DNA of 64,000 bases from positions 33,429 to 97,428 of the forward strand of contig MCFE01000312.1 in the NCBI GenBank assembly GCA_002104905.1, written 5' to 3'. This document shows positions 8,428-52,044 of the stretch, piece after piece; within the stretch, counting starts at the first letter, position 1; the number at the start of each line of letters is the position of its first letter. A program made the translations under genes and the position numbers. The DNA is from Basidiobolus meristosporus CBS 931.73 (taxonomy: Eukaryota > Fungi > Basidiobolomycota). The notes under the pieces are model-generated. The model was not told the origin of the DNA. It saw only the letters and a program-made list of their open reading frames with translations, and did no database searches.

Positions 8428-8449
8428 GCTTTCTCAAACAAGATTGACT

Positions 8450-16995: not shown

Positions 16996-19900
16996 CCCTA
17001 TGAAAAATAATTTGGTCCCACAGGTGGATCCAATCCAGATCAGCTGTCAAGATCCCATCAGGAAACCACAATAATATCAGCAGATTGGAATTAATGACTA
17101 TCTACACAATCTTATGATGGGATCACAATGGCATTTAGCTAATTTTACAGTCAAAAAATGTTAAAAAAGCATAATAGTGTTTGTATAGTATTATGCCAAG
17201 GGTGGCATGGCTTTGTTGCAGTCTTGATGGGCTCTACAACTATTTGAGTGGATCTAACTGGCCAGTACATTCAATTGCCTTATAGGGCAAAGACTTAACA
17301 GTGTTTTGACAGCTTCATTACAAGCCTCTCATGGAATTATCATGGCAGTATGGTGGCCTACAGCTAGTTCTGTATAGCACTGCCATACCAATTTACCAAG
17401 TGGTATTTCCTTTTTCTACCTCCCCTTGTGCAATTCATATATTCCACTGCAGAATCACCCCTCTTTATTCACTTACCCACTACTACCTTGGGTATTCCAC
17501 CTATAGCTCAAATTAAAAAATATTCTGGCCTTCTGCTTACTAACCTCTACAAACATGCACACCTGCCAAAATTAACATACTTCTATCACCTCAACTTTAT
17601 GGCTTTTTAGTGTAACACTTGCAAAGTTGCCATATACTATATAGTACTGGTAACATATACATCTTGCAAACATATGGTTGGTTGCCACCACTTCTGCCAT
17701 GAATACCTCCTGAATATCCCCAAAGAACTTTTTGTTATTTAGCCAATATATTCCTTCTCCCTGCTGGATTCTAGTCCCACTTATATGTGAGCTCTGGCTC
17801 TTATTTGTATGAATTCCATATTGGATGGTGTAGAAGTTGGGTTGTGTCCAAGAGAAATATGGCATACCTTGGTAGAGCTTTACTAATCAACATTAGTTGC
17901 TTATTGCACCCTACCCAACTTTGCATTATTTAACAGATTACCCATGCATTGGAGCTGCTTAGCTTTGTAATGCCATAGGCATAGGCGTCTCCATGTGCAA
18001 ATCTGTCCTCAGTATTTTCCAACTCTTTCTGGCTGTCCTCCATGTGCCAACTCATCACACCCATGACAGACTTGAAGGTAATATTCTTGATGTGATTGGG
18101 ATATGGTAGTACCTGCAACTTGACTCATCTTCTTATCTCAACACCCATCCACTCCATAGGAAGCTCCCAAAAGGTGAAGCAAAGTCCAACATTCTCAACA
18201 CACCAAGCAAGATGGAGTAGCAAGTAGATGCAGTAGTGGCAGAGATCTACATATTGTGGTGGTGTATAAGTCTAAGGGAGGGATACATCATACACTTCTT
18301 GAGTGTTTGTGTGTGGGCTGTTCACTGGGTGCAATAACCTTTGGCAAAAGCTTGCTGGGAATACTTGGTTTTTATTGTCTCCAATCTAATGTGAAGGGGA
18401 ATGAAGCTACAAGCTTGTCAAGGGAAAACTATTGAGCTACAATCCCCAACTTAGTTGGCATCTTAATAAAAGTATGCACTAGGTTCAGCATCCTTTGAGA
18501 TGATAATGTACTAAAGCTTCCAAAGTCAAAACAACTGTAAACTCTACCAGCAGGGACTTGAAAAGAATGCAATTGTAGTCAATAGTTACAATGACAGAAA
18601 AGTATCTTTACCTGCACAAGAACAAACTTGGGAAAGAATCAAATATAACAAAAGATACCTACTCAGGGTATTCCTCATACATAGTGCCTCCAAGGTCAGT
18701 TGGCTGACAGTACAGTTTCCTGGGAGTGTCCTGTGGTCTGGGGTTGGAAGTTCAGGTAGCAGCAGGTAACAGTGATCACACTAATCAGCAAGTTGGTATA
18801 ATGATGGAAGGGATGATGATTTATTGGTGAGCGATTGCCCCCCTATATACTTTTCTCACTGGCAAAGTGATTAACAAGCATGGTGTTTCAGAAGGTTCAA
18901 GTGGTCAAATAGAAGTCTTAATGATATTAGAATGAGCCAAGAATGTTCTAAGTAGGTACTGGAAGGTTCTGGTGGTCAAATAGAAATCTTAATGGCATCA
19001 GAATGAGCTAAGAATGTTTTAAGTAGGTTCTGGAAGGTTCTGAGAGGGGCAGCACACCCAACCAATCAGGTATCAGTATTAGAAACCTATATCACATAGG
19101 GTTACTAAATATGGTATAAGAGTGGTAGGGATGGTGATGTGGTTTGGCCATTATTACAGGTACCAGCATGGGTGCTTGCCTAATATAGAAGCACTTACAT
19201 CAAGCAATCTTACATAAAGAGAGGGATAACCTATGCAATAAGGTAGGCAGGTGTGAAAGTCAGCTGGCTTATGGGATATTGCTGATCAAGTAAGACAAAT
19301 GGGATAATACCAATGTAAGGGTAGTAGAAAAATAGGGATGTAGAAAATATGAGAATGAGCATATCTGTCAGTGGGTTTTGCTGTGACCCCACTACTGCAT
19401 TCAGCTTTGCCAGATGGTGCCATACAGTGCCAATTTGGGGTCAAAATTGACATGCATATGACCCTAAAATACTAAATTAATAACAAAATATACAGCACTC
19501 TCTGGCACTATGTTCAATGGCACAATGGAACAAGTCTAATGACTTCAGAAGGCCACTTGAATAAACACATATCCTGTTCATCCATTCCTTGCACTTGTAT
19601 TGTTGCATATGCATATGAGCATTGATTGGAGCCCATGAGAAGTACTTGGGTAGCAGATACTCTGTAATATCTGAGCCAATAATCAAGAGGACATCAGAAG
19701 TCTGGCATGCTAAAACCTTAAGGCCAGCATACCATGAGACAAGCAGGAGTTCAAGGCCAAGCAGAACATGCTTGACTTGCTCCATGGGCATTATCCTGAA
19801 TTCAAACAAGCAAACAGATTTCCAGCCAGCATTGGTATGCTGAGAAAGTATCTGAAGAATGGCAGGAACTATTAAAGGTAGAAGAACAAGGGTGCAATTG

Positions 19901-21347
19901 CTAAAAACAAGCAGCTTTCTCAAGAGCCTGTTACAAGCAGGGCCAAAAGTTTCAAACAAATATCAAAGAGGCATCAGGTAGCTGGAAGAGTGCCAATTAG
20001 GGAAATGCTGGCAGACACAGATGCACTAGCACAACATTTACCAAGGAGAGAGTGTAGATCTAATCAAGAAGTACTCAGTCCAAGTAGCAGTGAAGGATCT
20101 GGCAGTGATAAAAATGAGTGGCTCCCTCAGGAGCCTGTCACAGAATGGGCTGAGAGCTCAAAACAAGCAGGAAAGAATTGTCAGGTTGCCTGCAGAGTGC
20201 CAGCAAGAGATAAGCTGGCCAAAATAGATGCATCAGAGCAACATTTAACAAGGAGAAAATATAGTTCAGTACAAGAAGCACTCTGACAAAGTAGTAGTGA
20301 AATACCTGGCATTGATAAAGGAAAAGGTAAGCGGAAAAAGTCTACCAACTCCAGAGACAGAGAAGAATAAGAAAAAAACTGCAGTTCTTGCCAATTAACA
20401 CTGTCAGCCTGGAACATACAGAATCCCATCATAGCCAAGAAGAATTACCAACAAGAAAACAGCTGTATTCATAAGAGTCAGAAGCACAGCCAGTTGAGCT
20501 ACACTCCAGTGAGGTAGATGAGTTAGCAGAGAGTGGCAAATTGTCTACCACAGCCTCCATATTCTTAATTGTTGACAGAGTGGAGATCCCACTGACAGAC
20601 AAAGTAGCAACATCAAGAACTCAAAGGTTATCACAATGCTTTCAGTTGAATTCTGGAGTATTAATAAGCCCACCAAGAGGTTGCAGCACTTCTTCAAGAG
20701 CAGTGCTCAAGAAAATGCACGTGAATATTGCAAGGTTGTGTTGCAAAGACTGGCAGATGAGAATCTAGCCTTTGCAGTGCCGGCTGAAGACCAGGACATA
20801 TGGGAAGCAGTGAATGAACAGTGGCATAAAGTTGCAGGGTTCCTTCCTAAGTCATGGAAACAGAGCATCACAGCAGAAATACATATTAAGTGGTATATTT
20901 TAATGGAGTTACTTGCTGAGTGTGGGGTTGGGCTTAATGTTATTGTAGGGTATAGGGGCCTGTATTAGTCAAAACAATTGGCAATTGAGGTACAACTGAA
21001 GTTTCAATGGAAATAAATCAATTTGTAAGCATGAAAAGTACAAGAAATGGTTGAGTTGGGTAGTAAGGAGTGTGAAAAAGAGGCAATAGCCAATCAATGC
21101 ACACAAATGTAGGAGGCAATAGAGTGTCTGGGATTAGAAAGTGACAAAATTGACAGAAAACCAATCAAAAGCCACATTTGTATTGTTGCAATGAAAAATT
21201 TTGACAAAGTTTTATATGATATCTGCGGTATAATTATTTTCTGATGGTCTTTGCATGGTGTCCTGATGGGATCAATACCTCTTAGTCACAGGACTTAGGA
21301 TTTGTGACAGTCTTTTGACAGAATCATCACACTAATTTTACATAGGG
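16996..21347. mobile_element. CACTA-1, internally deleted copy with both TIRs
   Basis: CCCTATGAAAA ... TACATAGGG; 3-bp TSD GAA/GAA. Transposase C-half on minus (W.FPME..G..K..QVLPYPN) is fused at ~19670 to the ORF2 3' half on plus. Confidence 0.9.
18255..19396 (-). mobile_element. LTR-X solo copy inside CACTA-1
   Basis: tgtggtgg...ccactac(t); flanks ATAT/GCAT; the host transposase reads through when it is removed. Confidence 0.9.
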
Positions 21348-21454
21348 GAACTGATCAGATACAACAAATGGGATAAAACTAAAATAAGGGTAGTAAAAAA
21401 TATGGGAATGAGTCCATCTGTTGGTAGGTACTACTATGACCCCACTACACTGCT

Positions 21455-26205: not shown

Positions 26206-27830
26206 CCCTATGAAAGGTTATTGAGATGATCCTGTCAAAAGGTCATCACAAAGTTAAAGTCCCATGACTAAGAGGTACTGATCTTGTCAGGACACCATCT
26301 AGAGACCATTGAAAAATAATTGAACCCCAGATTTCACAAAAAACTTGGTCAGAATTCTTCATCACAACAATGTATAAGTAGCTTTTGATTGGTTCCCTGC
26401 CAATTTGCTCACTTTCTGATCTCAGACACTCTATTGCCTCCTATGTTTATGTGCATTGATTGGCTATTGCCTCTTTTTCACACTACTTACTTCTGACTCA
26501 ACCGTTTCTCTTACTTTTCATGTGTAGAGCTTGATTTATATATGTTGAAACTTCTGTTGTACCTCAATTTCTAATTCTATTGACCTATGCAAGCCCCTAT
26601 ACCTTACACTAATATTAAGCCTAACCACACACTCCACAAGTAACTCCATCAAAATCCACCACTCAATAAGTATTTCTGCTGCAAAACTCTGGTTCCACAA
26701 CTTTGGCAGGAACCCAACGGCTTTATGCCACTGTTCATTCACTGGTTCCCACACATCCTGGTCTTCAGCCAGCACTGCAAGTTGTAGCACCTCATCTGCC
26801 AGTCTTTGCAATAAATCCTTGCAATATTCCAGTGCATTTTCTTGAGTACTGCTCTTGAAGAAGTGCTGTAACCTTTTGATGTGCCTATTGATGTTCCAAA
26901 ACTCCACTGAAGGCATTGTGATAGTCTTTTGAGCTCTTGACATTGTAGCCTTGTCTCTCAGTGGAATCTCCACACAGTTAACAATGAAGGATGTGGAGGC
27001 TGTGGTAGACAAATTGCCTTTTTCAGCAAACTCATCTACCTTGCTGGAGTGTAGCTCAACTGGCTGCACTTCCAACTCTTGTGAATGCAGCTGTTTTCTG
27101 GTTGGTAATTCTACTTTGCTACAATAGGATTCAGTCTGTTCCTGGCTTACATTGTTGATTGGCAAGAACTGCAGGTTTTTTGCATGCTTCCCTGTCTCAG
27201 GCTTGGGAAGATATTCTTCCCTTTACCTTTTCCTTTATCACTGCCAGGTCTTTCACTGCTACTTTGTCTATGTGCTTCTTGTAAAGAACAATATTGCCTG
27301 CTGAATAAATTCTGCTTGGACTCATCTGTTTTGGCCTGCTTGTTCCTTGCTGGCACTCTTCTGGCAACCTGACATTTTTTTTTCCGCTTATTTTGAGCTC
27401 TCAACTATAGTTGTGACAGGCTCCTGTAGGAGCAGCTGGTTTTTATCACTGCCAGGTCCTTCACTGCTACTTTGACTGGGTGCTTCTTGAGTGGTACTAT
27501 GCTTTTTCCTTGATAAATGTTGTACTGGTGCATCCATGTCAGCCTGCTTGTCTCCAATTGGCACTCTTCCAGGTACCTGATGCCTCTTTGATGCTTGTCT
27601 AGAGCTTTTGGCCCTGCTTGTAGCAGGCTCTTGAGGAAGCTGCTGGTTTTTAGCCATGGCACCCTTGTACTTCTGCCTTTTATAGTTTCTGCAATTCTTA
27701 AGATACTTTCTTAGCAAACCAATGCTGGCCCTAAGTCCATTTGCCTGTTTGAATCTGGCATAATGGTCATGGAACAAGTCAAGTGCATTCTTCATGGCCT
27801 TGAGTTCCTGATGGTCCCATGGTATGCCGG

Positions 27831-29765
27831 TGTGGTAGTATATAGGTTCAAGGGAGAGATACATCCAACATTTCTCAAGTGTTTTGTGTGTGGGGTATTC
27901 ACTGGGTGCAATAACATCTGGCAAAAGCTTGCTAGGAATACTTGGGTTCTGTCTCTAATTTAATGTGATGGGGAATAAAGCCACAAGCTTGTCAAGGAAA
28001 AACTATTGAGCTACAATCCCCAACTTAGTTGGCGTCTTAACAAAAGTATGTGCTGGGTTCAGCGTCCTTTGAGATGAAAATGTACTAAAGCTTCCAAAGT
28101 CAAAACAACTGTAATCACCACCAGCAGGGACTTGATAAGAATGCAGCTGTGATCAATGGTTACAAAGACAGAAAAATATCTTTGCCTGTACAAGAACAAA
28201 CTTGAGAAAAAATTAAATATAATCAAAGATACCTACTCTGAGTATTCCTCACAAGTAGTGCCTCCAAGGTCAGTTGGCTGTCAACATGGTTTCCTGGGAG
28301 TGTCCTGTGGTCTGGGGTTGGAAGTTCAGGTAGCAGCAGGTAGCAGTGATCACACTGATCAACAAGTTGGTATATTGATAAAGGGGATGATGATTCATTG
28401 TTGAGGGATATGTAGTAATGGAAAGTATTCCATTGCTACAATATCTCTAAACCAATATTGACCCATTTCTTTATTTTGCTTTTTACTATTGTAACACACA
28501 AGTGAAAGATCAAGAATTTCCAACTTTAAAGGATAAATGCTCCAGACCTTGATAAGCAATCCACCCAAGAACATTATGTCATACAGAACATGCATTAGCC
28601 AACACATGTTTGAAATTACAGCTCATATGAAGCAGTACTCAAGGAGCTATGACCAAAAGAGTCCAATCATTATATATACTATGCCTTATTTGCAGGATTA
28701 CTATGGTCACTTTGATCGCATGTAACTTTTGAACCAACCAATCAAATCATGTTAACTTCTCAAAGGTGCTGTGCCTATGTCCGATCTGCGCCACTGCAAA
28801 GTGTTAGCTTTGTATCATGTGTATTGTTTGCGCAATTTCCCGAAAACTTTGATCCTTCAGAATTTTCATATATATGACTTCCCCAGCTGAAAAATAAAGG
28901 CAGTACCTCTCTTTCCAGAATCTCCACACTAATATTACAAGTTTAAAGGTTATAAGACTTCCCCCTACATCACTTGCACTGTTCAGTATTCTGACTTTGA
29001 TTGGTACTACATCAGTAAAGAGACTGCAAAGCTTACAAGAGTCCAATGTAAGTTCTACAAGAAACGACCACTTTTCTGTTGGAAAAGTCCTCCCTAAGAA
29101 ACCCCTTTACTCTAAAGACACCCCTTTAGACACCCCTTTAAGTCTAAAGACCCCTTTAGAGACCACTACAAGAAGCCCCTTTACTCTGAAGACACCCCTT
29201 TAGACACCCCTTTAGGTCTGAAGACCCCTTTAGAGACTTCTACAACACACCTGTTTAGGTTAAAGGGGAGCTCAGAATTTCCATATTAGGAAATATTTTC
29301 TCAGAAAGGAAAGTGACCACCAAATAAGGAAAAATTACTATAAAAGTAAATAAGCTCATTAGTTGAAAGAAGGTCAGAACACTGCTGTAGAAGTGATAAA
29401 CACTGCCTACAGTATACTTTGTGCCTAAGATTGAGGAAATTAGTGAAAATTATATCTTCTATTGGTATATCAAACTCCCAATAAGCTATTTCAGTAATAG
29501 CATACTGGAAGTTGTTGTATGTTGTTGATTAGCCTCTACACTGTAGAACAAGCCCCAAAATAATCATAATACAACACAACAGGTAGCCTCCCTTATATAC
29601 TTTTCTTACTGGCTAAGTGAATACTAATTATGGTGTCCCAGAAGATGGTACTGATCAGGTAAGACAAATGGGATAAAACTAAAATAAGGGTAGTAGAGAA
29701 ATAGGGAAGTAGAAAATATAGGAATGAGCACATCTGTCAGTGGGTATCACTGTGACCCCACTACA
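27831..29765 (-). mobile_element. LTR-X solo copy (contains Z insertion and an internal deletion)
   Basis: tgtggtag...ccccactaca; TSD CCGG/CCAG; the host ORF2 reads ggtatgccggccttaagg when it is removed. Confidence 0.9.
28411..29581 (+). mobile_element. Repeat Z, 1.17-kb TG..CA element (probable solo LTR)
   Basis: tgtagtaatgg...acaacacaaca; TSD GATA/GGTA; 74-bp tandem unit at 29102 and 29176. Strand is relative only. Confidence 0.85.
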
Positions 29766-31887
29766 CCAGCCTTAAGGTGATGGTGCGCCAGACTGCTGAT
29801 GGCCTCTTGTATATTAGCGCACTCTTCATTATTGCACTCAATGGCGTCACAGATCTTCAATGCTTTTTGATTTTTAGGCTTTGGTGTAACACCACATTGT
29901 CTCCCTCCCACACTGAGATAGGCTTTTCTGTGAGCTTTATCTTTGGGCACTGTTGTTTTGCTTCAAAGACTGTGTGGTGCTCCCTGCTGTTACATTAGGA
30001 AATGACTCAACTCTTGGCTGTAACATTGAGCTACTTGAGTTCCTTCTTTGCAGCGGAGATAATGGTTTCTCTACCTGTGATATTGATTGCTCTACACATT
30101 ATCCGCCCATCCTGCTTCTGAACTATTACCTGATTTCTCCGGCCATTACATCTATCCTATCAGCCACTGTACCAAGTTGGTTCATTAATGCTTTGGTATG
30201 AGCTGACAACCCACTTGCTAATATGGGTGATGGTGATGTTATCCTGGCCACTTGCTGATCTTGAACTGAGGGTACTGTGTTTGCTACATTTTCATCTGCT
30301 GGAGCATAATGGTGAGTTATGGCTCCACAGAGGCTCTCAATTGCCTACTTGACTAAGAGCCTGAGGAGTCTGCCTTATTACCTTTGATGGGCACACTGTC
30401 AACAGGGCCTTTTTTGGATGTAGCCCTGCTTGTTGCACTGAATTTCAAAGCAAATTGTTGTCCAACAGCTCTTCTGTTGCTGTTAGTGGTGGGGTTTGGT
30501 AGAGAACCACACGGCTTTACTTTATTTGTTGGTGGTATATATATGGAAGTCAGTCAAACCAAAGGGGAAATAGTGTTATATAGACATGTGTATGTGGTGC
30601 CACAGCTTTATTTATAATGCTTACTATGGCAGGTCATCATTGAATCTTACATTCATGTAGGTGCAATATCTCAAATACATGACTGTCTTAAGTTCACATG
30701 AGTATTGATCAAAAAGTGATATGATAGCGTTACATTGTTGAAGATCAAACTCTTTGCCCCATGGACAAGACAACTTTGACTTAACACCATAAGAGAAGAG
30801 AAAAAAGACCATGTGCTATTATGTTAAGCCTCTCAGCCATGAAGCATGTTGACAGCATAGGAAGTATTACAAATATCACGCCCAATGTTTTGCCACCCAA
30901 GTCATATTTGGTCATTCATGGATCACTACAGTACCAACAATATCTTGCTGGCCAGTTGATACCTCTATACTGGCACCTGGCCATCTTTGTCCCCTTGCAC
31001 AAACTGAGTCAGGTGAGTTTGTGATGCCTTGAGGCTCACCTCAGCCTTTGAATATGGCACATGGGGTGATAGCTCTGACAAAGAAGGTTCACTGATGGAT
31101 TTTGAGCCTATCTCCCCTAACAACAGTACCCTGTATCAGCCTGTTCAAATCCCCATATGCAATGAGAAAACACCCATTGAAGCAAATGCCAAGGATACTT
31201 TATGGAGCCAAGTGAGCCCAGTAATCCATCTACCGGTGAATGATGTAATGTTGTGGCTAGAGATGTGGCATGTTTCCACTAATATCAGTAATGGGGGCTT
31301 TGAGGATTTATTACTACTTCTTGCCAAAATCGTACCAGGATATAACTTACCATGTACATGGTACAAGTGGACAACCATCATGCAGCTGGCAGCATATGAT
31401 CCAGAGACTGTCCTGATTCCAGCATGAGTAAACAGTTGCATGGTATTCACATCCAAAAATGCTACAATTGCAACATGTCCAAATTGTCAGAAATTCACCA
31501 CCATTGAGGGAAAACATTGTTCACACTCCAGATATATTCCGGTCATATCCTGTCTGCGGAAGCTGATGCAGTCCGGCAGATATTGCAAAGCTATACAGTA
31601 CAGCACTCAGTATCAGTCAAGTGCAAACACATCCAATATATTCAATGGCAAACATTACAAACAGCTAAGATGCAAGAGCTACTTAGAGTGTATGTATGAC
31701 CATGCCTTTGCTTTAGCATATGATGGATTTTCATCAAACAAGTACTTGACCAGCAAATCCTGCTGGCCACTGATTCTCATCAACCTGAATCTGCCACCCA
31801 TTTTATAGTATTAGAGCAATAATCTGATAGTAGTCTCACTGGTATCTGGGCCTGATCACTGTCCAACCTGGATACCTACCTGTATTC

Positions 31888-36239: not shown

Positions 36240-36620
36240 CACTTCAAGAAAAGGGTTGGTCCTGCAGGTGAATCAGATTCACATCAGCCATCATGATCCT
36301 GCCAAGAGATTGTTAAAATGCCAGCAGCTTGGAATTAATAACCCCATACACAATCTTATTATAGGATCACATCAGTTTTGACTAACTTTACTGCCAAGTA
36401 TAATTATTAACTTGACCAGATTTTTGTAATCTTTTGACAGAAGATGTAAGGCATTGTGATGGTCTTGATGTGCTTTCTATCTATTTGTGCAGATCTGACC
36501 AGCCAGTACATCCAGTTGCCTTATACGTCAAGAAACATGATGGTTTTATAATGACCGCATTATCAGTCACTAATGGTACTTCAATGCTGGTACAACCACC
36601 TACAGTTAGTTCTAGACAAT

Positions 36621-39600
36621 TGTTGTATCCAAGAGAAAAGTGTAATAAACTCTTGAATGAGTTCACTGAACCTAAGTGACAACTAAGTACAGAATCTTAG
36701 AATTATTAAGAGCAACAGAAATATTAGCAAAGAAGTTCTGGTCTAATATTGGTGTTGTATATAGCTGAGCTAGGCTGTAAAGGCAGCAGAGATGGGTTGC
36801 TATGCAGGCTATGCTTGGTGCTCTTGAGAGTGCAAGATATGCTAGGCTTGGGTAGGAACTAGAACAAATTGTTGAATTCTTAATTTTGCTGAGGCACAAT
36901 CTTAGTTTTGTTGAGACACACACTAAACCAGAAGGTTCAGTAAACTTTATTTATACTTTTCTAATCAAGTTGAATTAGTAAGCACCAAGAAACTGGACAA
37001 ATTGAAAACAGTTGGTATGCTCATGGGTGTCTAGGATAAATGGGCAATTGCATCATTAATCAGCTGATATTTTGGCAACTGCCAAGTGGTTGGATAGATC
37101 TTAGATGACTAATCACCTGGAGAAGGCTTAGCAGTTCAGTTGAGAACATAATGACATCATCAAATTGATCAAGTGTGACAGATAAAACTAGATTCTGAGA
37201 AGTGATAAACTTAACCATAACTGGGATTAGTTATGTTTAGGTAAGGGAAAAGCAGTTAATGTGCTAGATTTCACAACAGAGTAAAATAGGCTAAATTTAA
37301 ATGTTGATGCACAACATCACTTCCTCCCAGGAGAGGGGTTTTCTGATATCTTCTGGGATCCCCTGCAGCTCCAACACTGATCAATGATAGGAACATCATC
37401 AATGTTGGTGTAAGGTTCTCAGGTGTTGTGTTTGGTATCATAGCCATTCCACTTCACTAAATAAAGACAACTTGGTTCTTCTCCATCATGGTCCATAATA
37501 GCTTCAACTGCATAGGATTCTGAAGTAACTGGGTCTTGATATATAAGCTTCAGTGAAGCAGGTGGAAAGTTTTTGGGTAGCAGTGCTCCAATATTGTCCT
37601 GAAGTACATAAGATCCACCAGTGATATCTCTGAAAACTTTGAATGGGCCTTCATATTTGGGGTCAAGCTTAGATTTTTGGATTGAAATTAGTGTCGTTGC
37701 ATACAAACCATCTGGGAAGCTGCTGTTCCTGTGTCTTGGGGCATATGTTGAGGCCATCTTTTACTTTGAGATCTTACTTCTGGTACTGATAGCAGGGTAG
37801 ACAATGATGGTAATGTACTCAAGTTGGTTCTTTAGCTTTTCTGTATTCAGCTTTACTTACTCTGTATTCTGGTAGTCTCCAAAGTAGTAGATTTTTCTTC
37901 AAAACATCAAAGAAAATGGTATTGATCCATGTAGAGCAGCTATTTTGGTGTTGATACCACACTGTACAGTTATTAGGTACTTGTCCCAATTCTTCTTGAT
38001 ACGTTTGATTGATTTCCTGATGATGCTAACAAGGTCTGAACATATCTTTTGGCAGGTCCATTAGCTTTGGGATGATTAGGAATCATCACACAGTGAACAA
38101 TGGCCCTATTCTGGCAAAGAGCTTTGATCATGTGATTCAAAATTCCGTTCCATTATCCAATTGAATGACCTTGGGGAATCCAAATTGGCAGAAGAGCTAG
38201 AATGGTGCTTGGGCAATAGTGGCAGCATACTTGTCTAGGATAGCTTTGAGGAAGACAAACTGTGTGCAGACATCCACAGTTACAAAGAGATAGTGACAAC
38301 AATCATCACTAGTGGTGAAAAGTCCAGCTAGATCAATTGCAATATGATCCATTGGAAGGCTTGCATGGATGGGACTCAAAAGGTGAAATCCATGGAGACT
38401 GATGTTGTAAGGTTGACATTCTCTGCAAGACAAGACGGATACTGGGCAGTTAACTCTAATACTTGGCCAGTGATATTCATCAGAGTGTTGCTTCTTCATA
38501 AGTGTGTCAGCTCCAAAGTGGCCAAGTAAATGACTCCTCTATATCAATGTTTTCCTTTTATTGGCATGTGGGATTTTCCAAGTTACTGAATCCAGTTGTG
38601 CAATTACTTTTGAAGTTGTAGTGAGCTTACTGATTATGTCAGTAGTCACATGTCTCTCCCAAGGTGAGGTTGGGAAATGTTTTCAAAGGTGGTCAGGCAG
38701 GATGTTGAGAACTCCTGGGCAATGAACAACTGTATATTCATAATCAAGTAGAGTATCAAGCCTGTTGGTAGGCATTTGAGTCAGAGTTGGTTGGGTATGA
38801 ATATAGACAAAGACTTGGTGGTCAGTGTACAAGGTAAAAGGGTTACTGTACAAGTACTGATGAAACTTTTTCAAGGAAAAGACCCTACTAAGTAGCTCCT
38901 TATTGGTGGTAGAGTAATTTCTCTCAGTGGCTTGTAGGGGTCTGGCTTGAAAAGAGATTCAGTGAGGTGGACTTTAGTCTACATTCTGGTATAGGACAGC
39001 CCCTAACTCAACATTAGATGCATCCATAGCAACAACAAAGGTCTTAGTAAAGTCTGGGTAGCATAGGGCGGGTGCTTGCAGGTGCAATTGGCAGGGTGAC
39101 TCAACTTCTTGGTCATGAGCCTTGTTCCAGGCTGAGGGAAGATCAGGACTATGACATAATTCATCCAATGGGGCACTCAATGGGGACATGAGAGGAATGT
39201 GTTCCCTGAAATAGTTGAATACCTCAAGATATTGTTGGAATTGCTTAGCACCAGTGGGTTTTTGGCTATTCAGGAATATTGGCCAGTTTGAAAGGGTCAA
39301 GTTGGTGGCCATCTGGTGTGACTATGAATCAAAGTATGTTGATATCGAGGCAAGTAAAACTGCACTCTTCAGCATAAAGAATCAGTCCTGCAGCTGTGAG
39401 TCTATTGATGACATCAATGCCATGAGTTGCATGATCACTGCGGTTTGTGGAAAATATGATCAAATCATCAACAAATACTATGGTGTATGGTATACTTTTG
39501 AGGATTATAGTCATGACCCTCTGGAACATGCTAATAAGTGTCTTTAGGCCAAAGGGAGCTCCCGGAAACATCCATTGCATACTATTCTAAATAAAGGCAG

Positions 39601-42600
39601 TCTTATGCTGATGGTCAGGATGGTTCTGGAGTTGGTGATATATATCCTCCAAGCACAATTGGGGTGATAGTTTGCACATGAAAGTGAGGAAACAATATCC
39701 TGGATTCTTGGAATTGAAAATTTATCATTTTGGAGAAGTTTGCTCAGAGGTCCATGATCCAGACAGGGTCTCTTGAGAGTTAAATTCCTATCAGCATCTT
39801 TACTATGTGCAAGCATTGAAGGGCTGTTGAATGCTCTATTGACAGGGGCTTGAGTGATAATTCCATTGTCAGCCCACTTTTAGACTATTTCATCAACCAA
39901 GTGTTGGGCAGAATGTGGAATTGGGTATTGCCTCCTCCAAGTTGATTCCACAGGTGGTGTTTCTAGCATAACAATAAATTCTGGAATAGTACAGAAATGG
40001 TTCCTGGGAATGACTTGGTTTCTCTCTATGATCAACTGAATATTCAATTTGACTGATTCACAATATGCTTGAAAAGTTGGGGCCAACTCCTCTGTTCCAG
40101 ATGGGGTGAAATAGTCTCAGGAATCTGATCCATGATGGGCAGCAGAGATTTAGTGATTCCCGGATGTAAAACTGGTAGTCCGCCTATATAAAAGCCAAGT
40201 TTGGTGAAGGTGTCTAGACCTATAACTACCAGAGGTCCATCTGAAATGTCAATAACTTCCATTTGATGCATGATAGTTGTGGAACCATAATCTATGTTGA
40301 TTGGGTTGGTGATACCAATTTATGGTACTGAGAGGTCCTTAGCTACAAATATGATTTTTTCTGGTTGCTTTTCTATTTCCAATTTAAGTTCTTTGACTAC
40401 ATTAGGTGGAACAATAGAGTTGAATGATCCAGTATTCAGTAGCACTACAGATGATTGGTTGTTGAGTTTGAGTGGCACCTCTATAGCTGTTAGCGGCGCA
40501 ATTGGTTGCTTCTTTTCTTGAACAGTTGCAATTTTAGTTGGAATTTCTTAAACCATCAGTTCTTGATTTGCTTCCTCATACCCTGTCATTTCATTGGCTG
40601 AGCTTTCATCTAGGATCTGAGTAATATTTACCAATGGCTTAGAGTTCTTCTCAGGGCAGGCAGGTGATCTATGCCCCATCTTTCCAAATTTGAAGCATTT
40701 GTCATCAGCATGTGGATTATCAGCTCTGATATTTTGCTGCTTCTCTGATGTGTGTCCTGACATGTTTGACTGCTGAGTGATGCCTTTGCATTCACCAGTA
40801 GAGTGATAGCATTTTCCATGAGGCCCACAATGCTTGGTAGCAGTTGACTTCTTTTGTGTCACATGACTGCACTTTTTTTGGTTTTTGCTGCATCTTGAGT
40901 AGAGTTGCCTGAGGCCTGGCTAACAGCCGCAGTCATGGTGTTTGTAAGTGTGAATATCTCTGAGATTTTGTTATAAGTGTGTGCAGGGTTGCATGCTTTG
41001 ACAATAGCAATATTACTCAGTAGCTGGTGTGTAAAGTTTAAAAGAAAATGAGAAGTAAGCAATGGATTGTCATCACTAACACCAGCTAGTCTCATTTGTC
41101 TCCGTAGTCTATCACAAAAGTGTAGCACAGATTTACCTTTTTGCATTTTATTATTCCCTATATTGCAGTTTAGATGCTCTTTCTTGATGGGATCATCAAA
41201 ATGGCCACAAAAGAGGTTTTGGGCAATTTTCCACACACTATTGGAAGGAATGTTTACTTCAACCCAGTCAGCATCTTGCAAGGTGAGACAGTGAGGCAGA
41301 GTCTAGTCTAATGGTGTCAGGGTCTGGCTGGTGTGCAGCTGAGACATGACTAAACTTGTAAACAAACTAAGTAGGATTCTTTATGGCACTGACTCCTTCA
41401 ACATAAGGAGGCAAGATCTTGGGACAACCACCGGGGCAGGTCTAGAGGAAGATGTAGATCTGGAGGATCCAAAGGCATGACTTCTTGGTGGCTGATGCAG
41501 AGCAAGGCTTGGCTAATTTTTAATGCTGTCAATTGCAATAGCAACATTCTCCAGGGCTTCTTAGATAATTACAAGTTCATCTTGTTAACTGGAAATAACT
41601 TCAAGAGGTTTATCTCTACAATGACTCTAAGATCTTGTTTTGGCAGGCATTGAGTGCTCAAGCATCAAAGTGTTTATTTCATGCATGATGTTTTCAAGCT
41701 TTTCAATTAGTTCTTCCTGATTTCTGTGGGCTACTTCCAAGATGGAAAGATTTGGATTGCTTGCTGCTGAGGACATATTGTGAAGTGGTTGGATGTAATG
41801 GAATTCATTGAAAGAAATGTTGTATCCAAGAGAAAGTGTAATACACTCTGGCATAAGTTAACTGGACCCAAGTGACAACTAAGTGAAGAATCTTAGGATT
41901 GTTAAGAGCAACAGATATATTAGCAGAGAAGCTCTGGTCTAAAACTGGTGTTGCATAAAGCTGAGTTGGGCTATAAATGCAACAGAGTTGGTTTGCTATG
42001 CACGCTAAGCTTGGTGCTCTTGAGAGTGCTAGATATGCTGGGTGTGAGTAGGAACTAGAACAAATTGTTGAATTCCTAATTTTGCTGAGGCACAATCTTA
42101 GTTTTGTTGAGACACACACTAAACAAAAAGGTTCAGTAAAATCTATTCATATCTTTCTGATCAAGTTGTATTAATAAGTACCAAGGGACAGGACTAATTG
42201 CGTTGTGATCTACTGTTTGAATATATAAGTTAGATCAGTTTTTAGTCAAATCAATTAGTTACATGTTTGACCTATCAGTATATCAGGGTTATCTATCAAG
42301 TCAATAGCATTAGTCAGCAAATGAATCAGCAGATCCTTATCAGACAGAAATAGATATAATAAGATGGATCTTATTGGGCAATGATGATGTAAGCAAATGA
42401 GTCATCAGCCACAACCTACATTAGGAAACACAATTCAGTCAGCATTTGATCTGGCAAAATGTATACAAGGAGCTGCTGGGACCTCTATAATAATCAGTTC
42501 AAGTTCTAGTGAATACAATCCTAGCTAAACTCCCTTTTCCTCTACAACTCTTATTCCCAGACTTGTAACTATTGAAATCTGTTGGTGTGTTCTTAGGTGC

Positions 42601-42885
42601 ATAAGATAAATGAGCAATTGCATCATTAATCAGCTGATGTCTTGGCAACTGCTAAGTGGCTGGATAGATTGCAGATGACTAATCATTTGGAAAGGCTTAC
42701 TAGATCAGTTGAGAACATAATGACCACATCAAATTGATCAAGTGTGAAAGCTAAAAATTGATTCTGAGAAGTTATGAAATAAACCATAACTGTGATTATT
42801 TATGATTGGGTTAGGGAAAATCAGTTAGGGTACTAGACTCTCCAGCAGAGTAAATAGGCTAAGCTTTAAATGTTGATGCACAGCA
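36621..42885 (-). mobile_element. Full-length decayed chromoviral Gypsy LTR retrotransposon
   Basis: LTRs 36621-37316 and 41818-42885; TSD ACAAT/ATAAT; PPT GGGAGGAAGTGA. Order gag (ATG 41776, CCHC-like knuckle), PR, RT (VFVDD), RNaseH, IN (IAIDLAG, KLDPKYEGPF), chromodomain (YAVEAIMDH..YLVKWNGY). Many stops. Confidence 0.95.
42201..42570 (+). mobile_element. LTR-W solo copy in the Gypsy 5' LTR
   Basis: Homologous to 45269-45637; TSD ATTG/ATTG. Confidence 0.9.
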
Positions 42886-45268
42886 ATAATACTATTGCAC
42901 CAATTTACCAATTGGGTTTTCCTTTTTTACCTCCCACTGGGTCATTCATGTTTGCACTGTAAAATCATACCTCTTGACCTGCTTACCCACTGCTACCTTG
43001 ATTATTCCCATATAGCTTAAATCAATAAGTACTACAACCTTCTGCTTAGTAACTTCCACAGACACACACACCCGCTGCAGTTGATACACTTCTAAAATTG
43101 TACTTGGAAGGTTTCCATATATTTTGATTGCTGGTAACTTATGCATCTGGCAAACATATGCTTGTTAGCCACCACTTTTGCCATGAATACCTTCTCAATA
43201 ACTGCAAAGAACTTTTTGGTATGTCAGCAATATATTCTTTGTCCCTGCTAGATTCTGATCCCGCTTATAGGTGTGCTCTACCACTTGTTTGAGTGAATTG
43301 CATACTGAAGGGTATAGAAACATGCTTGTGACCAAGAGAAGTCCATTGTACTTTGGTAGTGTTGCTCTAATAAAAATTAGTTACCTGCTACACCAAACCA
43401 AAACTTACATTACTCAACTGATTACCCACACATTAGAGCTGCTTAGCTTCTCAATGCCAAAGGCATAGGTGTCTCCATATGCACATGTGACCTTGGTATT
43501 TTCCCACTCTTCCTGGCTGTCCGCCATGTGCTCACTCATCTTGTCCATGACATACTTAAAGGTAATATCCTTGATGAGATTAGGATATGGTAGTATGTGC
43601 AACTTGGATTAGCATCATATCACCCCACACATCTGCTCCATAGGAAACTCCCAAAGCATGAAGCAAGGTTTAATATATTCCACACACCAGGCAGGATGGA
43701 GCAGAAATTGTATACAGTAGTGGCAGAGACTGACACATTCATCATTGTGTTTGTAGCATAGCCACTTAAATCCTAAATCAAGCTCTTTGGATAAAAGCTG
43801 TAGATACAGTGAGTTGGCATTGGTCATCCACATCTAGATAAATATTCCTACAATGTCCACATATAACTCCCAATGCTTTCAATGTATTCTTGGTAGATAT
43901 GCTTCAGATGGCCTCTTGAGTAAATCATATTCCATTCATCCAGTATTTACTTTTGTGTTGTTGCATATGCATATGATTGTTGATTGGAGCCAGTGAGAAT
44001 ACTTAGGGTAGCCAATACTCTGTAACATTTTGCTAATTGTTTCAAATTTCTCCAGTATGTCAAAAGGCTCATTTAGCTTAAGATGCCTCATGTGCAGCTT
44101 GGTCATCAATATAGGGATATTGTTGAAGAGCAAATGCATTGCACTCAGTGGAAAGCTCTTGCTCCAACAAATGCCCTCTATCTTAAGTATCTCTGGCTTC
44201 TGATGAATTCCATATTCCAGCAATGGCTTAAAGCTTGCCAACTTTATTGCCATTGCATGCTGATGTCAGTATATTCTCTCTGTGCAACAACAATACTCTG
44301 TGTGTTGGTGTTTGATAATAATAATGTGAGTGAGTTATGGATAAAGTCCCCTGGATCTCACACATTCAACCACAATACCATCCATGCTGCCAAGAAAAGC
44401 CAGCTATCATGCTAATGGCTGAGGTATCTCCACTGCAGATAACAATATGCACTTTGACATAATGGCCATTGACTAGTATCCTGCTTAAAGCTTGAAAATT
44501 TCATCCAGCAATGGATACAGGTTGCTATCCAGGTTGGGTAGTGATTTAGACCCAGGTACCAGTGAGGTGGTATATAAGTCCAAGGGAGAGATAAGTCCAA
44601 CACTTCTCAAGTGTTTTGTGTGTGGGGTGCTCACTGGGTGCAATAACATCTGGCAAAAGCTTGCTAGGAACACTTGGGTTCTGTCTCTATACTTAATTGA
44701 AGGGGAATAAAGTCACAAGCTTGTCAAGGGAAAACTATTAAGCTACAATCCCCAAATTAGTTGGCATCTTAACAAAAGTATGTGCTGGGTTCAGCATCCT
44801 TTGAGATGACAATGTACTAAGGCTTCCAAAGTCAAAACAACTGTAAACTCCACCAGCAGGGACTTGATAAGAATGCAGCCATGGTCAATAGTTACAAAGA
44901 CAGAGAAGTATCTTTGCCTGTACAAGAACAAGCTTGGGAAAGAATCTAATATAATAAAAGATACCTACTCTGAGTATTCCGCACAAGTAGTGCCTCCAAG
45001 GTCAGTTGGCTGACAGCACGGTTTCCTGGGAGTGTCCTGTGGTCTGGGGCTGGAAACTCAGGTAGCAGTAGGTAGCAATGATCATACTAATTAACAAGTT
45101 GGTATATTGATAAAAGGGATGATGATTTATTGTTGAGGGATAGCATCCCTTATATACTTTTCTTACTGACTAAGTGATTATTAATCATGATGTTCCACAA
45201 GGTTCTGGATATCAATAGAAGTCTTAATGACATCAGAATGACCTAAGAATGCTCTAAGTAGGTGCCAG

Positions 45269-45637
45269 TGTTATGATCTGCCGCTTGAATGTTTAAGTTA
45301 GATCAGTTTTTAGTCAAATCAACTAGTATATGTTTTAGGTTATCAGTATATCAGTATTATCTATGAAATCAGTAGCATTAGTCAGCAAATGAATCAGCAG
45401 ATCCTTATCAGACAGAAATAGATATATTAAGTAGGATCTTATTGGGTGATGATGATGCAATCAAATGAGTCATCAGCCACAACCAACATTAGGAAATACA
45501 ATTAGTCAGCAATTGATCTGGCAAAATGTATATAAGGAGCTGCTGGAACCTCAATAAAAATCAGTTCAAGTTTTAGTGAATACAATACTAGCTAAACTCC
45601 CTATTCCTCTACAACTCTTATACCAAGACTTGTAGCA
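45269..45637 (+). mobile_element. LTR-W solo copy, 369 bp
   Basis: TGTTATG...GTAGCA; TATA (tgtatataagg) and AATAAA; TSD CCAG/CCAG. Confidence 0.9.
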
Positions 45638-45714
45638 CCAGAGGGTTCTAAGAGACAAAGCAAGTCCAACCAATTAGGAATCAGTACTCTGAAACCTTTG
45701 TAACATAGGGATAC

Positions 45715-46083
45715 TGTTGAAATATTGGACTATTTGGCATCATTCAGCAGCTAAAAATTTACTTAACAATTCTAGGCTAGTCTTAGTCACTGTAGGACTC
45801 ATTTACTGCCTTAACTTTGCCACTTTCTCCAGATATATGATCTTATGATTATTCCCCTACAGTCAGGATCAAATTAGCACTATTACCAAGCATTATGTAC
45901 TAACCCTGAAACTGTTACAGAATGCTCCTGAATATTGAGAAACCCTCCCTACTTAGTGTTGCAGCTGTATTACTTCTACAAAGGTATAAATACTGAGCTT
46001 CTTTATGAATAAACAACAGTTCAACTATTATCACTATTTCTTGATAAGTTCCTTATATCCAAATCACTTCTTAAATTGCAACA
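45715..46083 (+). mobile_element. Copia-1 solo LTR, 369 bp
   Basis: ~96% identical by eye to 57694-58062; TSD GATAC/GATAC. Confidence 0.95.
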
Positions 46084-48749
46084 GATACCATACATGGTAT
46101 GGAAATGGTTGGGGTGGTGACACAAGTTGATCATGTGTTACAGGTACTGGCGTTGATACTTGCCCAATATAGAGGCATTTACAGGCATTATATGTTACAT
46201 CAAGTGAGGGATAACTTCTGCAATAAGGTAAGCTGATGGGATAGTCAACCAACCTACGGGATAGTACTGATCAGGTAAGACAAGTTGGATAAAACCAAAA
46301 TCAGTGTAGTGGAGATATAGGGAAGTAGAAAATATGGGAATGAGCACATCTGTCAGTGGGTGTCACTGTGACCCTACTACACCAGTGGGAGTACCCTGAG
46401 ATTTGTGCTCTGATACCACTAGATAGGTGGCTGATTCAGGTTGATGAGAATTAGTGACCAGCAGGATTTGCTGGTAGTGTACTTGTTAAATGAGAATCCA
46501 TCAAGTGCCAAGACAAAGGCATGGTAATACATACCTTCAAAGTAGCCCTTGCTACTTAGTTGCTTGGAATGTTTTCCATCAGATATATTGGAAATGTTTG
46601 TGCTTGATTAATTGTCAGCAAGGTACTTTATAGCTTCACAGAAGTCTTTGGACTTCATGAGCTTCTTTGGAAAGGGTTTTACAGTAATATATCTGGAGTG
46701 TGATCATTGTTTTCCCCCAATGGTGGTGGATTCCTACAAGTTGGACACCTTGCAATGATGGTATTTTTTGATGTAAATGCCATGCAACTATTGATACATG
46801 CTGGTATTAGGATGGTCTCTGGGTTATATGTTGCCAGCTGTATGACAGTTGCTCATTTGTAACATGTACATGGTAAGTTGCATTTTGAAATGATTTTAAC
46901 AATAAGCAGAAGTAAATCCTCAAAGCCTCCATTATTGATATGAGTGGAAACGCGCCACTTCTCTAGCCACAACATCAGATCATCCACCTGTAGTTGGATT
47001 AATGGGCTCACTTGGCTCCTAAAGTAACCTTGGCTTTTTTTTCCATGGGTGTTGTCTTATTGCACATTGAAATCTTGCTGGGCTCATGCATGGTACCGCT
47101 GTAAGGGGAGATAGGCTCACATTACATTAGTAACCCTTCTTCTTCAGAGCTATCACTCTGCATACCATATTCAGAAGACTGAGGTGAGCCTAAAGGCTTT
47201 GCAAACTCACATGACGCAGTTTGCACAAGGTGACAAGTATGGCTAGGTGCTGTAATAGGAGTATCAAGTGACTGGCAAGATATTGTTGGTACAGTTGTTA
47301 CTGATGAATGGTCAAATATTACTTGTGATGCAAAACACTGGCAGTGATCCTTGACATACTTCCTATGCTGATGGCATGCTTCATAGCTGAGAGGCTTGGT
47401 AAAATAGCCATATGGTCTTTTTTCTCTTCTCTTACAGCATTGAATCAAAGTAGTCTTGTCCATGGGGCAAACAGTTTGACACACAACTGCAGAACACTAT
47501 TATATCATTTTTTTGTCCATACTCATATGTGCTTAAAATATTCTTGTATTTGAGGCATAGCACATACATAAATGTAATATCTAATGATGACCTGCCATAG
47601 TAAGCATTACAAATAAAACTGTGGCACCACATACTCAAATGCATTGAACATTATTCACCATTTGGTTTTACTCACTTTCATACATATGTTGCTAAAATAT
47701 AAAGCAAAGATGTGTGGCTCTCAGTCAAGTAGACAAACAAGAATCTCCGCAGAATAGCAAGTTGATCATAGTTATTGGGTAGATGAGAATGTGACAAATG
47801 CAGTACATTTGGTTGAAGACCAGCAAGTGGCCTTTAAAACTTCACCACCACCCATATCTGCAAGTAAGTTGTCAGCTCATACCAAAGCATTAATGAGGCA
47901 ATTAGGTGCAGTGGCTAATAGGATAGATGCTCTGGCACAGAGAAATCAGCAAGTAGTCCAGTAACAGGATTAGCAGATAATACAGGTAGAGCAATCAACT
48001 CCCCAGGTAGGCAAAGACAGTATCTTTGCTGTAAATAAGGAAATCAGGTAGCTCAATGTCACAGCCAAGAATGGAGCCATTTCCTGAAGGAACATCATAT
48101 ACTCTTTGAAGCACAATAACAGTGCCCAAAGATAACACCCACAGAAATACCTATCACAGCATGGGAGAGAGAAACCATGATGTTTATACCAAAGCCTAAG
48201 AATCCATAAACACTGAAGATCTGTGAAGCCATTGAGTGCAATAATGAAGCATGGAATGATATTCATGAGCCAGTGAGAAGTCTTGCATGCCATCACTTTA
48301 AGGTCAGCATACCATGGGACCATCAGGAACTTAAGGTTGAGCAGAATGTGCTCAATTTGTTGTGTGAGAATTATCCTGGATTCAAGCAAGCAAATGAATT
48401 TTGGGTTGCATTGGTATGTTAAGAGGTTATAGCAGAAACTATCAAAGGCAAAAGAACAAGGGTGCAATGGCTAAGAACTAGCAGCTCCCTCTAGAGCCTG
48501 TTACAAGCGCGGCCAAAAGCTCTTAACAAGCATCAAAAAGAAGTCATGTAGCTGGAATAGTGCCAACAAGGGACAAGCAGGCAGATACAGAGGCCCCAGC
48601 ACTACACTTATCAAGGAAAAAGTATATTTCCACTTAAGAAGCATTCAGTCAAAGTAGCAGTAGAGGACCTAGCAGTGATTAAACCAGTGGCTGCCTCAGG
48701 AGCCTGATGCAACTAGGGCTAAGAGCTCAAAACAAGCAGATAGAAACAT

Positions 48750-49819
48750 TATAGTGGGGTCACAGTGACACCCATTGACAGATGTGCTCATTCCCATATT
48801 TTCTACTTCCCTATTTCTCTACTACACTTCTTTTAGTTTTATCCCATTTGTCTACACTTGATCAGTACTATTCCATAAGCCAGCTGACTATCACACCTGC
48901 TTACCATATTGCATAGGTATCCCTCACTTTATGTAAGATTACTCTCTGTAAGTGCTTCTATATCAGGGAAGCACCCACCCCAGTACCTGTGACATATGTT
49001 CAAGCTGTGTCACCATCCCTACCACTTCTATATCATATAGGGTATCCCTGTGTTACACAGGTTTAAAGTACTGATTCCTGATTGGTTGAATATGCTGTGC
49101 CTCTTAGAACCTTCTGGCATCTACTTAGAATACACTTAGCTCATTCTGATGTCATTAAGATTTCTATTGATCTCCAGAACCTTTGAGAACACCATGATTT
49201 GTAATCACTTAGCCAGTGAGAAAAGTATATAAAGGAGGCAATCCCTCAACAATAAATCTTCATCCCTTTTATCAATATACTGTCTTGTTGATTAGTGTGA
49301 TCACTGCTACCTGCTGCTACCTGAATTTCCAGCCCCAGACCACAGGACACTCCCAGGAAACTGTGCTGACAGCCTACTGACCTTGGAGGCACTACTTGTG
49401 AGGAATACTCAGAGTAGGTATCTTTTATTATATTAGATTCTTTCCCAAGCTTGTTCTTGTACAGGCAAAGATACTTCTCTGTCTTTGTAACTATTGACCA
49501 TGGCTGCATTCTTATCAAGTCCCTGCTGGTGGAGTTTACAGTTGTTTTGACTTTAGAAGCCTTAGTACACTGTCATATCAAAGGATGTTGAGCGCAGCAC
49601 ATACTATTGTTAAGACACCAACTAAGTTGGGAATTGTAGCTCAATAGTTTTCCCTTGACAAGCTTGTGGCTTTATTCCCCTTCAATTAAGTATAGAGACA
49701 AAATCCAAGTATTCCTAGCAAGGTTTTGCCATAGGTGATTGCACCCAGTGAACACCCCACATACAAAACACTTGAGAAGTGCTGGATGTATCACTCCCTA
49801 GGACATATACACCACCACA
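48750..49819 (+). mobile_element. LTR-X solo copy, 1070 bp
   Basis: tatagtgggg...caccaccaca; gtatataaagg followed by caataaa gives the sense orientation; flanks ACAT/ATGT. Confidence 0.9.
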
Positions 49820-50989
49820 ATGTCAGGTTTCCAGTAGAGTGCCTGCAAGGGACAAGCAGGCCAGAACACAATCACCTGAACAGTATTTGCCAATGAGAAA
49901 ACACAGGTCAATACAGGAAGCACTCAGACAAAGTAGCAATGTTGGACCTGGCAGTTACAAAGGAAAAGGTAAAGGGAAAAAGTTCTGTCCAAGCCAGAGA
50001 CATGGAAACACAAGAAAAGAGCTGCAGCTGTTGCCAGTTGATTCAATAAGTCCAGAACAGACTGTTCCCCAGCATAGCCAAGAAGAATTACCAACAAGAA
50101 AACAGTGTTTTCACAACAGTTGGAAGTGCAGCAAGTTGAGCTACATTCCAGTTAGGTGAATGAGTTTGCAGGGAAAAGCAATTTGTCAACTACTGCCTCC
50201 ACATCATGCATTATATACAGAGTGGAGATCCCACTCACAAACAAAGCAATAACAACAAGAATTTAAATGACTATTGCAATGCCCTGAGTGAAATTTTGGA
50301 GCATTAAAAGCTACTCCAAGAGGTTGCTGCACCTCTTTAAGAGCAGTGCTCAAGAAAATGCACTTTAATATTGCTAGGACTTATTTTAAAGACTGATAGA
50401 TAGGGTTCTAGACCTTGCAGCTCTAGCTGCAGGCCAGGACATATGGGAACCAGTGAATGAACAGTGGCATAAAGTGGTTGAGTTCCAGCCAAAGTCATAG
50501 AAACAGAGCATTACAGCAGAAATACATATTGAGCAATGGATTTTAATGGAGTTACTTGTTGAATGTGGGGTTTAGCTCAATATTAGTGTAGGGTATAGGG
50601 ACTTGTATAGGTCAATACAATTGGCAATTGAGGTACAACTTAATATTCAATGGAAATAAATTGATTTGCATGTCTGAAATGTATGAGATATGGTTGAATC
50701 AAAAAGTACTGAGTGTGAAAGAGAGGCAATAGCCAATCAATATGCACAAACATAGAAGGTAATTGTGTGTCTGGGAGCAGATAGTGAGAGTATTGGGAGT
50801 CAACCAATCAAAAGCCACTAATGTATTGTTATGATGCAAACTTTTGACCAAGTTTTTTGTGAATCTGCCGTACATTTGTTTCTTGATGGCCTTTGCACAA
50901 TGTTCTGGTGGGATCAATACCTCTTAATTATGGAGCTTTAAACTTGTGACAGCCTTTTGGCACAATCATTGCAATAGTTTTCATAGTGC

Positions 50990-52040
50990 TGTGATGGTGT
51001 GTAAGTCCTAGGGAGTGATACATCCAACACTTATCAAGTGTTTTGTGTGTGGGGTGTTCACTGGGTGCAATCACCTATGGCAAAACCTTGCTAGGAATAC
51101 TTGGATTTTGTCTCTATACTTAATTGAAGGGGAATAAAGCCACAAGCTTGTCAAGGGAAAACTATTGAGCTACAATTCCCAACTTAGTTGGTGTCTTAAC
51201 AATAGTATGTGCTGGGCTCAACATCCTTTGATATGACAGTGTACTAAGGCTTCTAAAGTCAAAACAACTGTAAACTCCACCAGCAGGGACTTGATAAGAA
51301 TGCAGCCATGGTCAATAGTTACAAAGACAGAGAAGTATCTTTGCCTGTACAAGAACAAGCTTGGGAAAGAATCTAATATAATAAAAGATACCTACTCTGA
51401 GTATTCCTCACAAGTAGTGCCTCCAAGGTCAGTAGGCTGTCAGCACAGTTTCCTGGGAGTGTCCTGTGGTCTGGGGCTGGAAATTCAGGTAGCAGCAGGT
51501 AGCAGTGATCACACTAATCAACAAGACAGTATATTGATAAAAGGGATGAAGATTTATTGTTGAGGGATTGCCTCCCTTATATACTTTTCTCACTGGCTAA
51601 GTGATCACTAATCATGATGTTCCAGAAGATTCCAGAAATCAATAGAAGTCTTAATGACATCAGTATGAGCTAAGAGTATTCTAAGTAGGTGCCAGAAGGG
51701 TTGAAGAGGCACAGCACATCCAACCAATCAGGAATCAGATCTCTGAAACCTGTGTAACATAGGGATACCACCTATGGTATGGAAATGGTAGGGATGGTGA
51801 CACAGGCTGACTATGTGTTGTGGGTACTGGTGCAGGTACTTGCCTGGTTTAGATGAATATAGTGAAGGATAACTTAAGCAATAAGGTCAGCAGGTGTGAT
51901 AGTCAGCTGGCTTATGGGATAGTACTGATCAGGTGTAGACAAATGGGACAAAACTAAAAGAAGAGTAGTAGAGAAATAAGCAAGTAGAAAATATGGGAAT
52001 GAGCACATTTGTCAGTGGGTGTCACTGTGATCCCACTATA
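50990..52040 (-). mobile_element. LTR-X solo copy, 1051 bp, inverted relative to 48750-49819
   Basis: tgtgatgg...cccactata; flanks GTGC/GCAC; inserted at the very end of the CACTA TIR. Confidence 0.9.
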
Positions 52041-52044
52041 GCAC

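Follow-up and report, generated by a model that had tools for sequence, protein, structure and literature searches.

The question raised by the last 64 kb of contig MCFE01000312.1 (assembly GCA_002104905.1, Basidiobolus meristosporus CBS 931.73), hereafter the window, is whether a repeat family in its transposon nest, which we call X, inserts at a preferred sequence. A preliminary description of this DNA had proposed that every X target site is centred on a CpG dinucleotide, and that the two halves of each 4-bp target duplication later lost this CpG independently. Positions given here are window coordinates unless stated otherwise. From the flanking sequences, a CG-centred palindromic target is well supported for most X copies, although not for all of them. 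We consider it likely that X is a long terminal repeat (LTR), most likely of Ty3/gypsy type, and that the corresponding integrase has a built-in preference for 4-bp palindromes with CG at the centre.

X is an element of ~1,050 bp, and both BLAST and multiple alignment confirm that the family is real, with six copies in the window, all of them solitary. Its ends are TGTGGTGG...CCCCACTACA, or TGTGGTGGTGT...CCCCACTACA in the multiple alignment, and the TG...CA termini form a short inverted repeat (TGTGGTGGTGT... and ...ACCCCACTACA in the aligned copies), with variants in copies D and E, which end in TA, and in copy A, which ends in CT. This inversion is limited to 9 of 11 terminal bases and does not extend into a longer terminal inverted repeat (TIR): the 5' 150 bp, aligned locally with the reverse-complemented 3' 150 bp, give a best score of 15.0, against a shuffled mean of 15.1. 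In its structure X looks like the solo LTR of an LTR retrotransposon. Pairs of X LTRs flanking gag-pol were not found in the window, which bears out the earlier statement that it holds no internal coding region for X. No X flank in the window begins with TGG, as a primer binding site would, and no polypurine tract precedes any copy, the sequence upstream of E not being purine-rich. Two other arrangements could be rejected. The flanking repeat is not the interior of an element with X as its 3' LTR, since it is itself a DNA transposon with TIRs and makes 3-bp duplications, and C is not a 5' LTR with E as its partner, since C has an empty sister site of its own. Metagenome contigs scanned for exact X motifs yielded no more copies, and the contig DNA at positions 12771-48235 of the record, walked via its single-exon genes, is genic DNA only and contains no X.

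The TIR DNA transposon, ZY, is the usual host of X. ZY copies contain A, B, C and D, E adjoins a ZY end, and in the case of GF it is ZY that has split the X copy. We used uninserted sister copies of the interrupted repeats to read each site as it was before insertion, and at A, B, C and D the 4-bp duplication is seen by comparison with such empty sites. Copy B (27831-29765, + strand) is flanked by CCGG (27827-27830) and CCAG (29766-29769), and its sister empty sites read CTGG and CTGA. One CCGG half is intact, and on the flanking sequence the target of B is certain to have been CCGG. B is interrupted by U, an LTR-like insertion of 1.17 kb (28411-29581, duplication GATA/GGTA), and also has an internal deletion. 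Copy D (48750-49819, - strand) has the + strand flanks ACAT (48746-48749) and ATGT (49820-49823), and its three sister empty sites read TTGT, ATGT and ACAT. One half of D has decayed to CA and the other to TG, which means that CG was still in place at insertion, and the case for ACGT as the target is strong.

Copy A (18255-19396, + strand), which lies inside the ZY copy that splits GF, is flanked by ATAT (18251-18254) and GCAT (19397-19400), a reading that is valid only if the 3' end of this copy is taken as ACTACT and not as ACTACA. Its sister empty sites, ATGT, ACAT and ATGG, point to ACGT as the ancestral sequence of the sister family, and A was probably inserted at a CG-centred palindrome. 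An internal tandem duplication of ~70 bp is present in A at 18962-19030, with X consensus ~636-714 present twice. Copy E (50990-52040, + strand) is flanked by GTGC (50986-50989) and GCAC (52041-52044), and no sister site was resolved. The probable target is GCGC, with caveats at the junction: the first 3 nt of the left flank GTGC are the end of the ZY TIR, with a C added, and the flanks of E can be taken as a target duplication only if ZY arrived first. Copies D (-) and E (+) stand head to head, 1.17 kb apart. Their identity is 99.6% in columns 151-600 of the alignment and falls to 80-88% in columns 601-1050, a mosaic suggestive of gene conversion between inverted repeats that lie next to each other.

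The remaining two copies do not give a CG centre. Copy C (44563-46381, + strand) has CCAG on both sides (44559-44562 and 46382-46385), and its only sister empty site is CCAG as well, so that C was probably CCAG when it was hit. Two solo LTRs lie inside C, one of 369 bp from a family V (45269-45637, duplication CCAG), the other of copia type (45715-46083, duplication GATAC). GF consists of an internal part at 16643-16995 (+ strand, X ~603-952, the 5' part lost) and a 3' part at 21351-21449 (+ strand) with the single flank CTGC (21450-21453), and is uninformative, as it has a lone flank and no sister site. The preliminary description had counted the CTGC piece as a separate copy. It belongs with 16643-16995, which lay outside the range then considered, since this part stops at the X position where 21351-21449 starts and the two are separated by the ZY copy 16996-21347 with its duplication GAA (16993-16995 and 21348-21350); the window therefore contains six copies and not seven pieces. 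Because the ZY copy that splits GF carries copy A, X was active both before and after the arrival of ZY.

Every 4-bp flank quoted in the preliminary description is present at its copy, and with the ends of X fixed by five aligned copies and the empty sister sites, the pattern remains. All 11 flank centres are pyrimidine-purine (YR) steps, and each of the five paired sites has complementary outer bases (A..T in A and D, C..G in B and C, G..C in E). A CG centre is shown for two or three X sites. The earlier claim that every site is CpG-centred thus holds for B and D and probably for A and E, while C was probably CCAG and GF offers a single flank.

The state of the surrounding DNA explains why so few of these centres would still read CG. 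Heavy decay of CpG to TpG/CpA affects the TEs (transposable elements) of the B. meristosporus genome. In the window, the first ~16 kb are genic, with a CpG observed/expected ratio of 0.5-0.7, and the 34 kb of contig upstream of the window have 0.65-0.95. In the transposon nest, from ~16 kb to the window end, the ratio falls to 0.03-0.15, TpG/CpA rises to 1.3-1.4 and the remaining dinucleotides stay at 0.8-1.14. Such a base composition, confined to the TEs, is what methylation of CpG and subsequent deamination leave behind, with 5-methylcytosine (5mC) as the probable cause. For cytosine methylation in Basidiobolus the literature yielded a CDCA7-like gene only (PMC10538959), and no methylome of B. 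meristosporus was found. A comparison of two ZY copies shows the same decay, with 41 discordant TG/CA dinucleotides against 2-15 for other double transitions. Of the 76 CpGs inferred for the X copies only 4 are left, and the decay is near saturation. A CG-centred duplication is therefore expected to have decayed to TG or CA, at random, in almost every half, and half of such duplications are expected to be mismatched at both central positions. Independent decay of this kind is the best reading of B and D and is compatible with all copies, so that the CG-centred preference would be masked in most of them. The corresponding earlier claim stands for B and D; C was likely CCAG from the start and E is ambiguous.

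Could the pattern be a coincidence or a boundary artefact, six small and diverged flanks having been fitted to a hypothesis formed post hoc? The sample is small, and A and E are ambiguous. Against this, the frequency in the nest of 4-mers that combine a YR centre with complementary outer bases is 0.061, which gives a probability of 5e-6 for at least five of six sites, and a YR centre alone in six of six sites has a probability of 2e-4. The 5e-6 margin survives a generous correction for the post hoc choice. The boundaries are fixed as described above, one intact CCGG remains, and the mismatches between duplication halves are concentrated centrally: they affect 7 of 20 positions in X, six of the seven at the two central positions, compared with 2 of 36 positions in the control families of the nest (p = 0.007). 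We regard coincidence as highly improbable. The control families with 4-bp duplications are V (CCAG, ATTG) and U (GATA/GGTA, GAAT), and those with 5-bp duplications are copia-type LTRs (GATAC, GGATC, CTTCC) and a chromovirus, W (ACAAT/ATAAT). Almost all of these duplications are intact, and they do not have CG at the centre. The earlier statement that other families lack the pattern is confirmed for GGATC, CTTCC, GATAC, ATTG and ACAAT/ATAAT; a further duplication it had named, ATTC, was not located. On these flanks the CG-centred habit is specific to X within the nest and is not regional.

The 11 YR centres are also what would be seen if the X integrase simply favoured central flexibility and took any YR step, most TG and CA centres then being original and not decayed CG. 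An excess of YR steps at the centre is a general feature, most marked where the duplication is 4 bp (PMC4422553), and the centre of C, whose two halves and sister site all have CCAG, looks as if it had been CA from the beginning. However, B keeps an intact CG, and the halves of D and E read CA on one side and TG on the other, which from an original TG or CA would need two transitions in one 4-mer. The sister copies of the A and D sites are also split between TG and CA. From the discordances between ZY copies we estimate that CpG occupied ~2.7% of positions in ancestral ZY, and that only ~14% of the ancestral YR steps were CG. The probability that at least three of five X sites fell on an ancestral CpG is 1.9e-4 under random insertion, and still 0.022 if any YR centre was accepted. 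This explanation therefore seems unlikely to us.

We favour instead a mechanism in which such flexibility is narrowed to CG. The X integrase would cut its target with a 4-bp stagger, and a two-fold symmetric integrase complex would join the element ends 4 bp apart and bend the target centre. Retroviral integrases favour a flexible central YR step, most strongly at a 4-bp stagger (PMC4422553), and a symmetric complex that reads each half-site may select palindromes of the form N-CG-N' (CCGG, ACGT, GCGC). Restriction of the YR step to CG together with symmetric outer contacts would give the palindromes observed. The duplicated CpGs would then end up in methylated TE DNA, where each may deaminate separately to TG or CA, and after such separate decay the flanks of an old copy would look inverted (ACAT/ATGT, GTGC/GCAC) and not direct. 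That the preference resides in the integrase, that X belongs to the Ty3/gypsy superfamily and that 5mC caused the decay are all things that we infer.

Several observations weigh against this mechanism. The pattern was picked after the data had been viewed, and the six X copies all come from one 48-kb nest. No internal region or integrase of X lies within the window, and we infer the LTR identity, the gypsy affiliation and the intrinsic nature of the preference. Copy C suggests that the requirement for CG is probably not absolute, unless three decays went in the same direction. The halves of A, ATAT and GCAT, need extra non-CpG changes under any reading. At E, the 7 nt GCACCAA to the right of the copy (52041-52047) are extra in comparison with sister copies of the older interrupted element, and our attempt at an exact reconstruction of the E insertion site failed, with these ~7 bases left over.

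A further possibility, suggested by the location of the copies, is that the integrase or a partner recognizes 5-methyl-CpG, so that insertions home to silenced TEs. All six X copies are in or against other TEs, no copy is found in ~50 kb of CpG-rich genic DNA of the same contig, and the duplicated CpGs decayed after insertion, so they did become methylated. Nesting is, however, not specific to X, since the other families of the nest are all nested too, and the selective loss of genic insertions explains the distribution. At the ancestral CpG density of the TEs we estimate a probability of ~0.12 that six of six copies would lie in the nest. Ginger1 elements, which share the target, were not found to be attributed to methylation in the paper describing them (PMC2836005). 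CpG today occupies 3.8% of positions in the first 8 kb of the window, which contain genes, and 0.2% in the nest, and is thus ~18 times denser in the former. A CG preference alone would therefore steer new insertions to genes and young TEs, away from old silenced TEs, and the idea of steering into silenced DNA requires true recognition of methyl-CpG. We think homing of this kind quite unlikely, and we would give equally little credence to the narrower claim that the integrase or a tethered partner discriminates the methylation state of the central CpG.

How does the X target compare with known ones? Among Ginger1 duplications 75% read CCGG and 24% CCGT/ACGG, and the Ginger1 transposase closely resembles gypsy integrases (PMC2836005). 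Ginger1 and X share the 4-bp duplication, CG at positions 2-3 and a TGTNR 5' terminus, which is TGTGG in X (PMC2836005). The X sites, CCGG in B, CCAG (or CCGG) in C, ACGT twice and GCGC once, match Ginger1 at the centre and are looser at the outer base, which may be A, C or G (ACGT, CCGG, GCGC). These likenesses, and the six solitary copies with no internal region, raise the possibility that X is a non-autonomous, Ginger1-like, cut-and-paste DNA transposon mobilized by a gypsy-integrase-like transposase. But Ginger1 elements have TIRs of 40-270 bp, and X has none, its terminal match ending at 9 of 11 bases and its end alignment equalling the shuffled mean. The described Ginger1 elements are animal (PMC2836005), whereas X is fungal and LTR-like, with a length of 1.05 kb and TG..CA ends that are typical of an LTR. 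Membership of X in Ginger1 was ruled out on its lack of TIRs, and we hold a Ginger1-like mode of transposition to be very unlikely. By analogy of target, Ginger1 is nevertheless the closest precedent for X.

The precedent proposed earlier, the Drosophila errantiviruses ZAM and Tirant, applies only loosely. These are LTR retroelements with a sequence-specific, CG-rich, palindromic 4-bp target, like that of X, and the ZAM integrase directly binds its target CGCGCg (PMC2527525). Their target is, however, CGCG within CGCGCg, with GC at its centre, whereas the X centres are YR, and neither CGCG nor the sequences it would decay to match any X flank; Ginger1 is closer. Errantivirus LTRs have distinctive terminal nucleotides according to a review, while X has plain TG..CA. 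Errantiviruses are insect elements, and the review mentions infectivity for gypsy and ZAM. Retroviral integrases with a 4-bp stagger, those of PFV and MLV, resemble X in having a weak palindromic consensus and a flexible central YR (PMC4422553), but their preferences are weak and admit any YR, whereas X is apparently CG-specific (p = 0.02 against YR) with complementary outer bases.

To our knowledge, few LTR retrotransposons integrate sequence-specifically, and the cases documented in the literature covered are mainly insect errantiviruses. A fungal LTR with a Ginger1-like, CG-centred target suggests that this specificity is old in one branch of the gypsy-type integrases, or that it arises recurrently. 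A CG target in a genome that erodes CpG creates a feedback, in which old TEs lose target sites and genes keep them. It also makes directly testable whether integration in a CpG-methylating genome tolerates, avoids or needs 5mC. If the methyl-CpG explanation were true, the silencing mark of the host would serve as a safe-harbour address for the retrotransposon, progressively erased by CpG decay. In CpG-decaying genomes real target duplications can look inverted or mismatched, and tools that demand identical duplications can miss them.

The ZY transposon that carries most X copies is represented by a 4.35-kb copy at 16996-21347 (+ strand), with CCCTATGAAAA...TTTTCATAGGG ends and a 3-bp duplication, by further copies at 26206-~33448 (-), ~36241-50988 (+) and 57446-54568 (-), and by a fragment at 16342-16637 (-). 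Its TIRs are CCCTATGAAAAATAATTTGG.../...TTTTCATAGGG, its 3-bp duplications are GAA/GAA and TAT/TAA, and it occurs in a short form of ~3 kb and a long form of >5 kb. A protein search with its 228-aa open reading frame (ORF) gave no match, and the ORF at 31428-31805 has a weak, sub-threshold match to Transposase_21 (CACTA/KDZ-type). The ZY copy that adjoins X copy E has an aberrant left start at 36236-36245, CACTTCAAG instead of CCCTATGAA.

The chromovirus W (36621-42885, - strand) is a full-length but decayed Ty3/gypsy element with remnants of a chromodomain, SH3_Tf2-1, reverse transcriptase (RT) and RNase H. Its LTRs measure ~700 bp, it lies in a ZY copy between the halves of the 5-bp duplication ACAAT/ATAAT, and a V solo LTR (42201-42570, duplication ATTG) sits within one of these LTRs. 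At 57694-~62000 lies a copia element whose LTR is 370 bp long and whose gag-protease-integrase ORF is open over 839 aa (58099-60618). This ORF ends at the point where a second copia-type element begins with its 5' LTR (60608-60962), and in both elements GGTTATGAGCCCC follows the LTR. X copy C contains a solo LTR of the first element that is 96% identical. Neither the copia ORF nor other ORFs of the window had an entry in the protein collection, and the closest relative of the copia ORF there has only 45% identity, which indicates that the TE genes of this genome are absent from that collection. In the genic part of the window, a cyclin-like ORF at 4220-4960 has 100% identity to a 195-aa gene product. 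Four copia-type LTRs of 345 bp (TGTTGTAAAA...TTACAACA) lie at 7742-10048, within 2.3 kb of otherwise gene-rich DNA, and two of the four have clean 5-bp duplications, GGATC and CTTCC.

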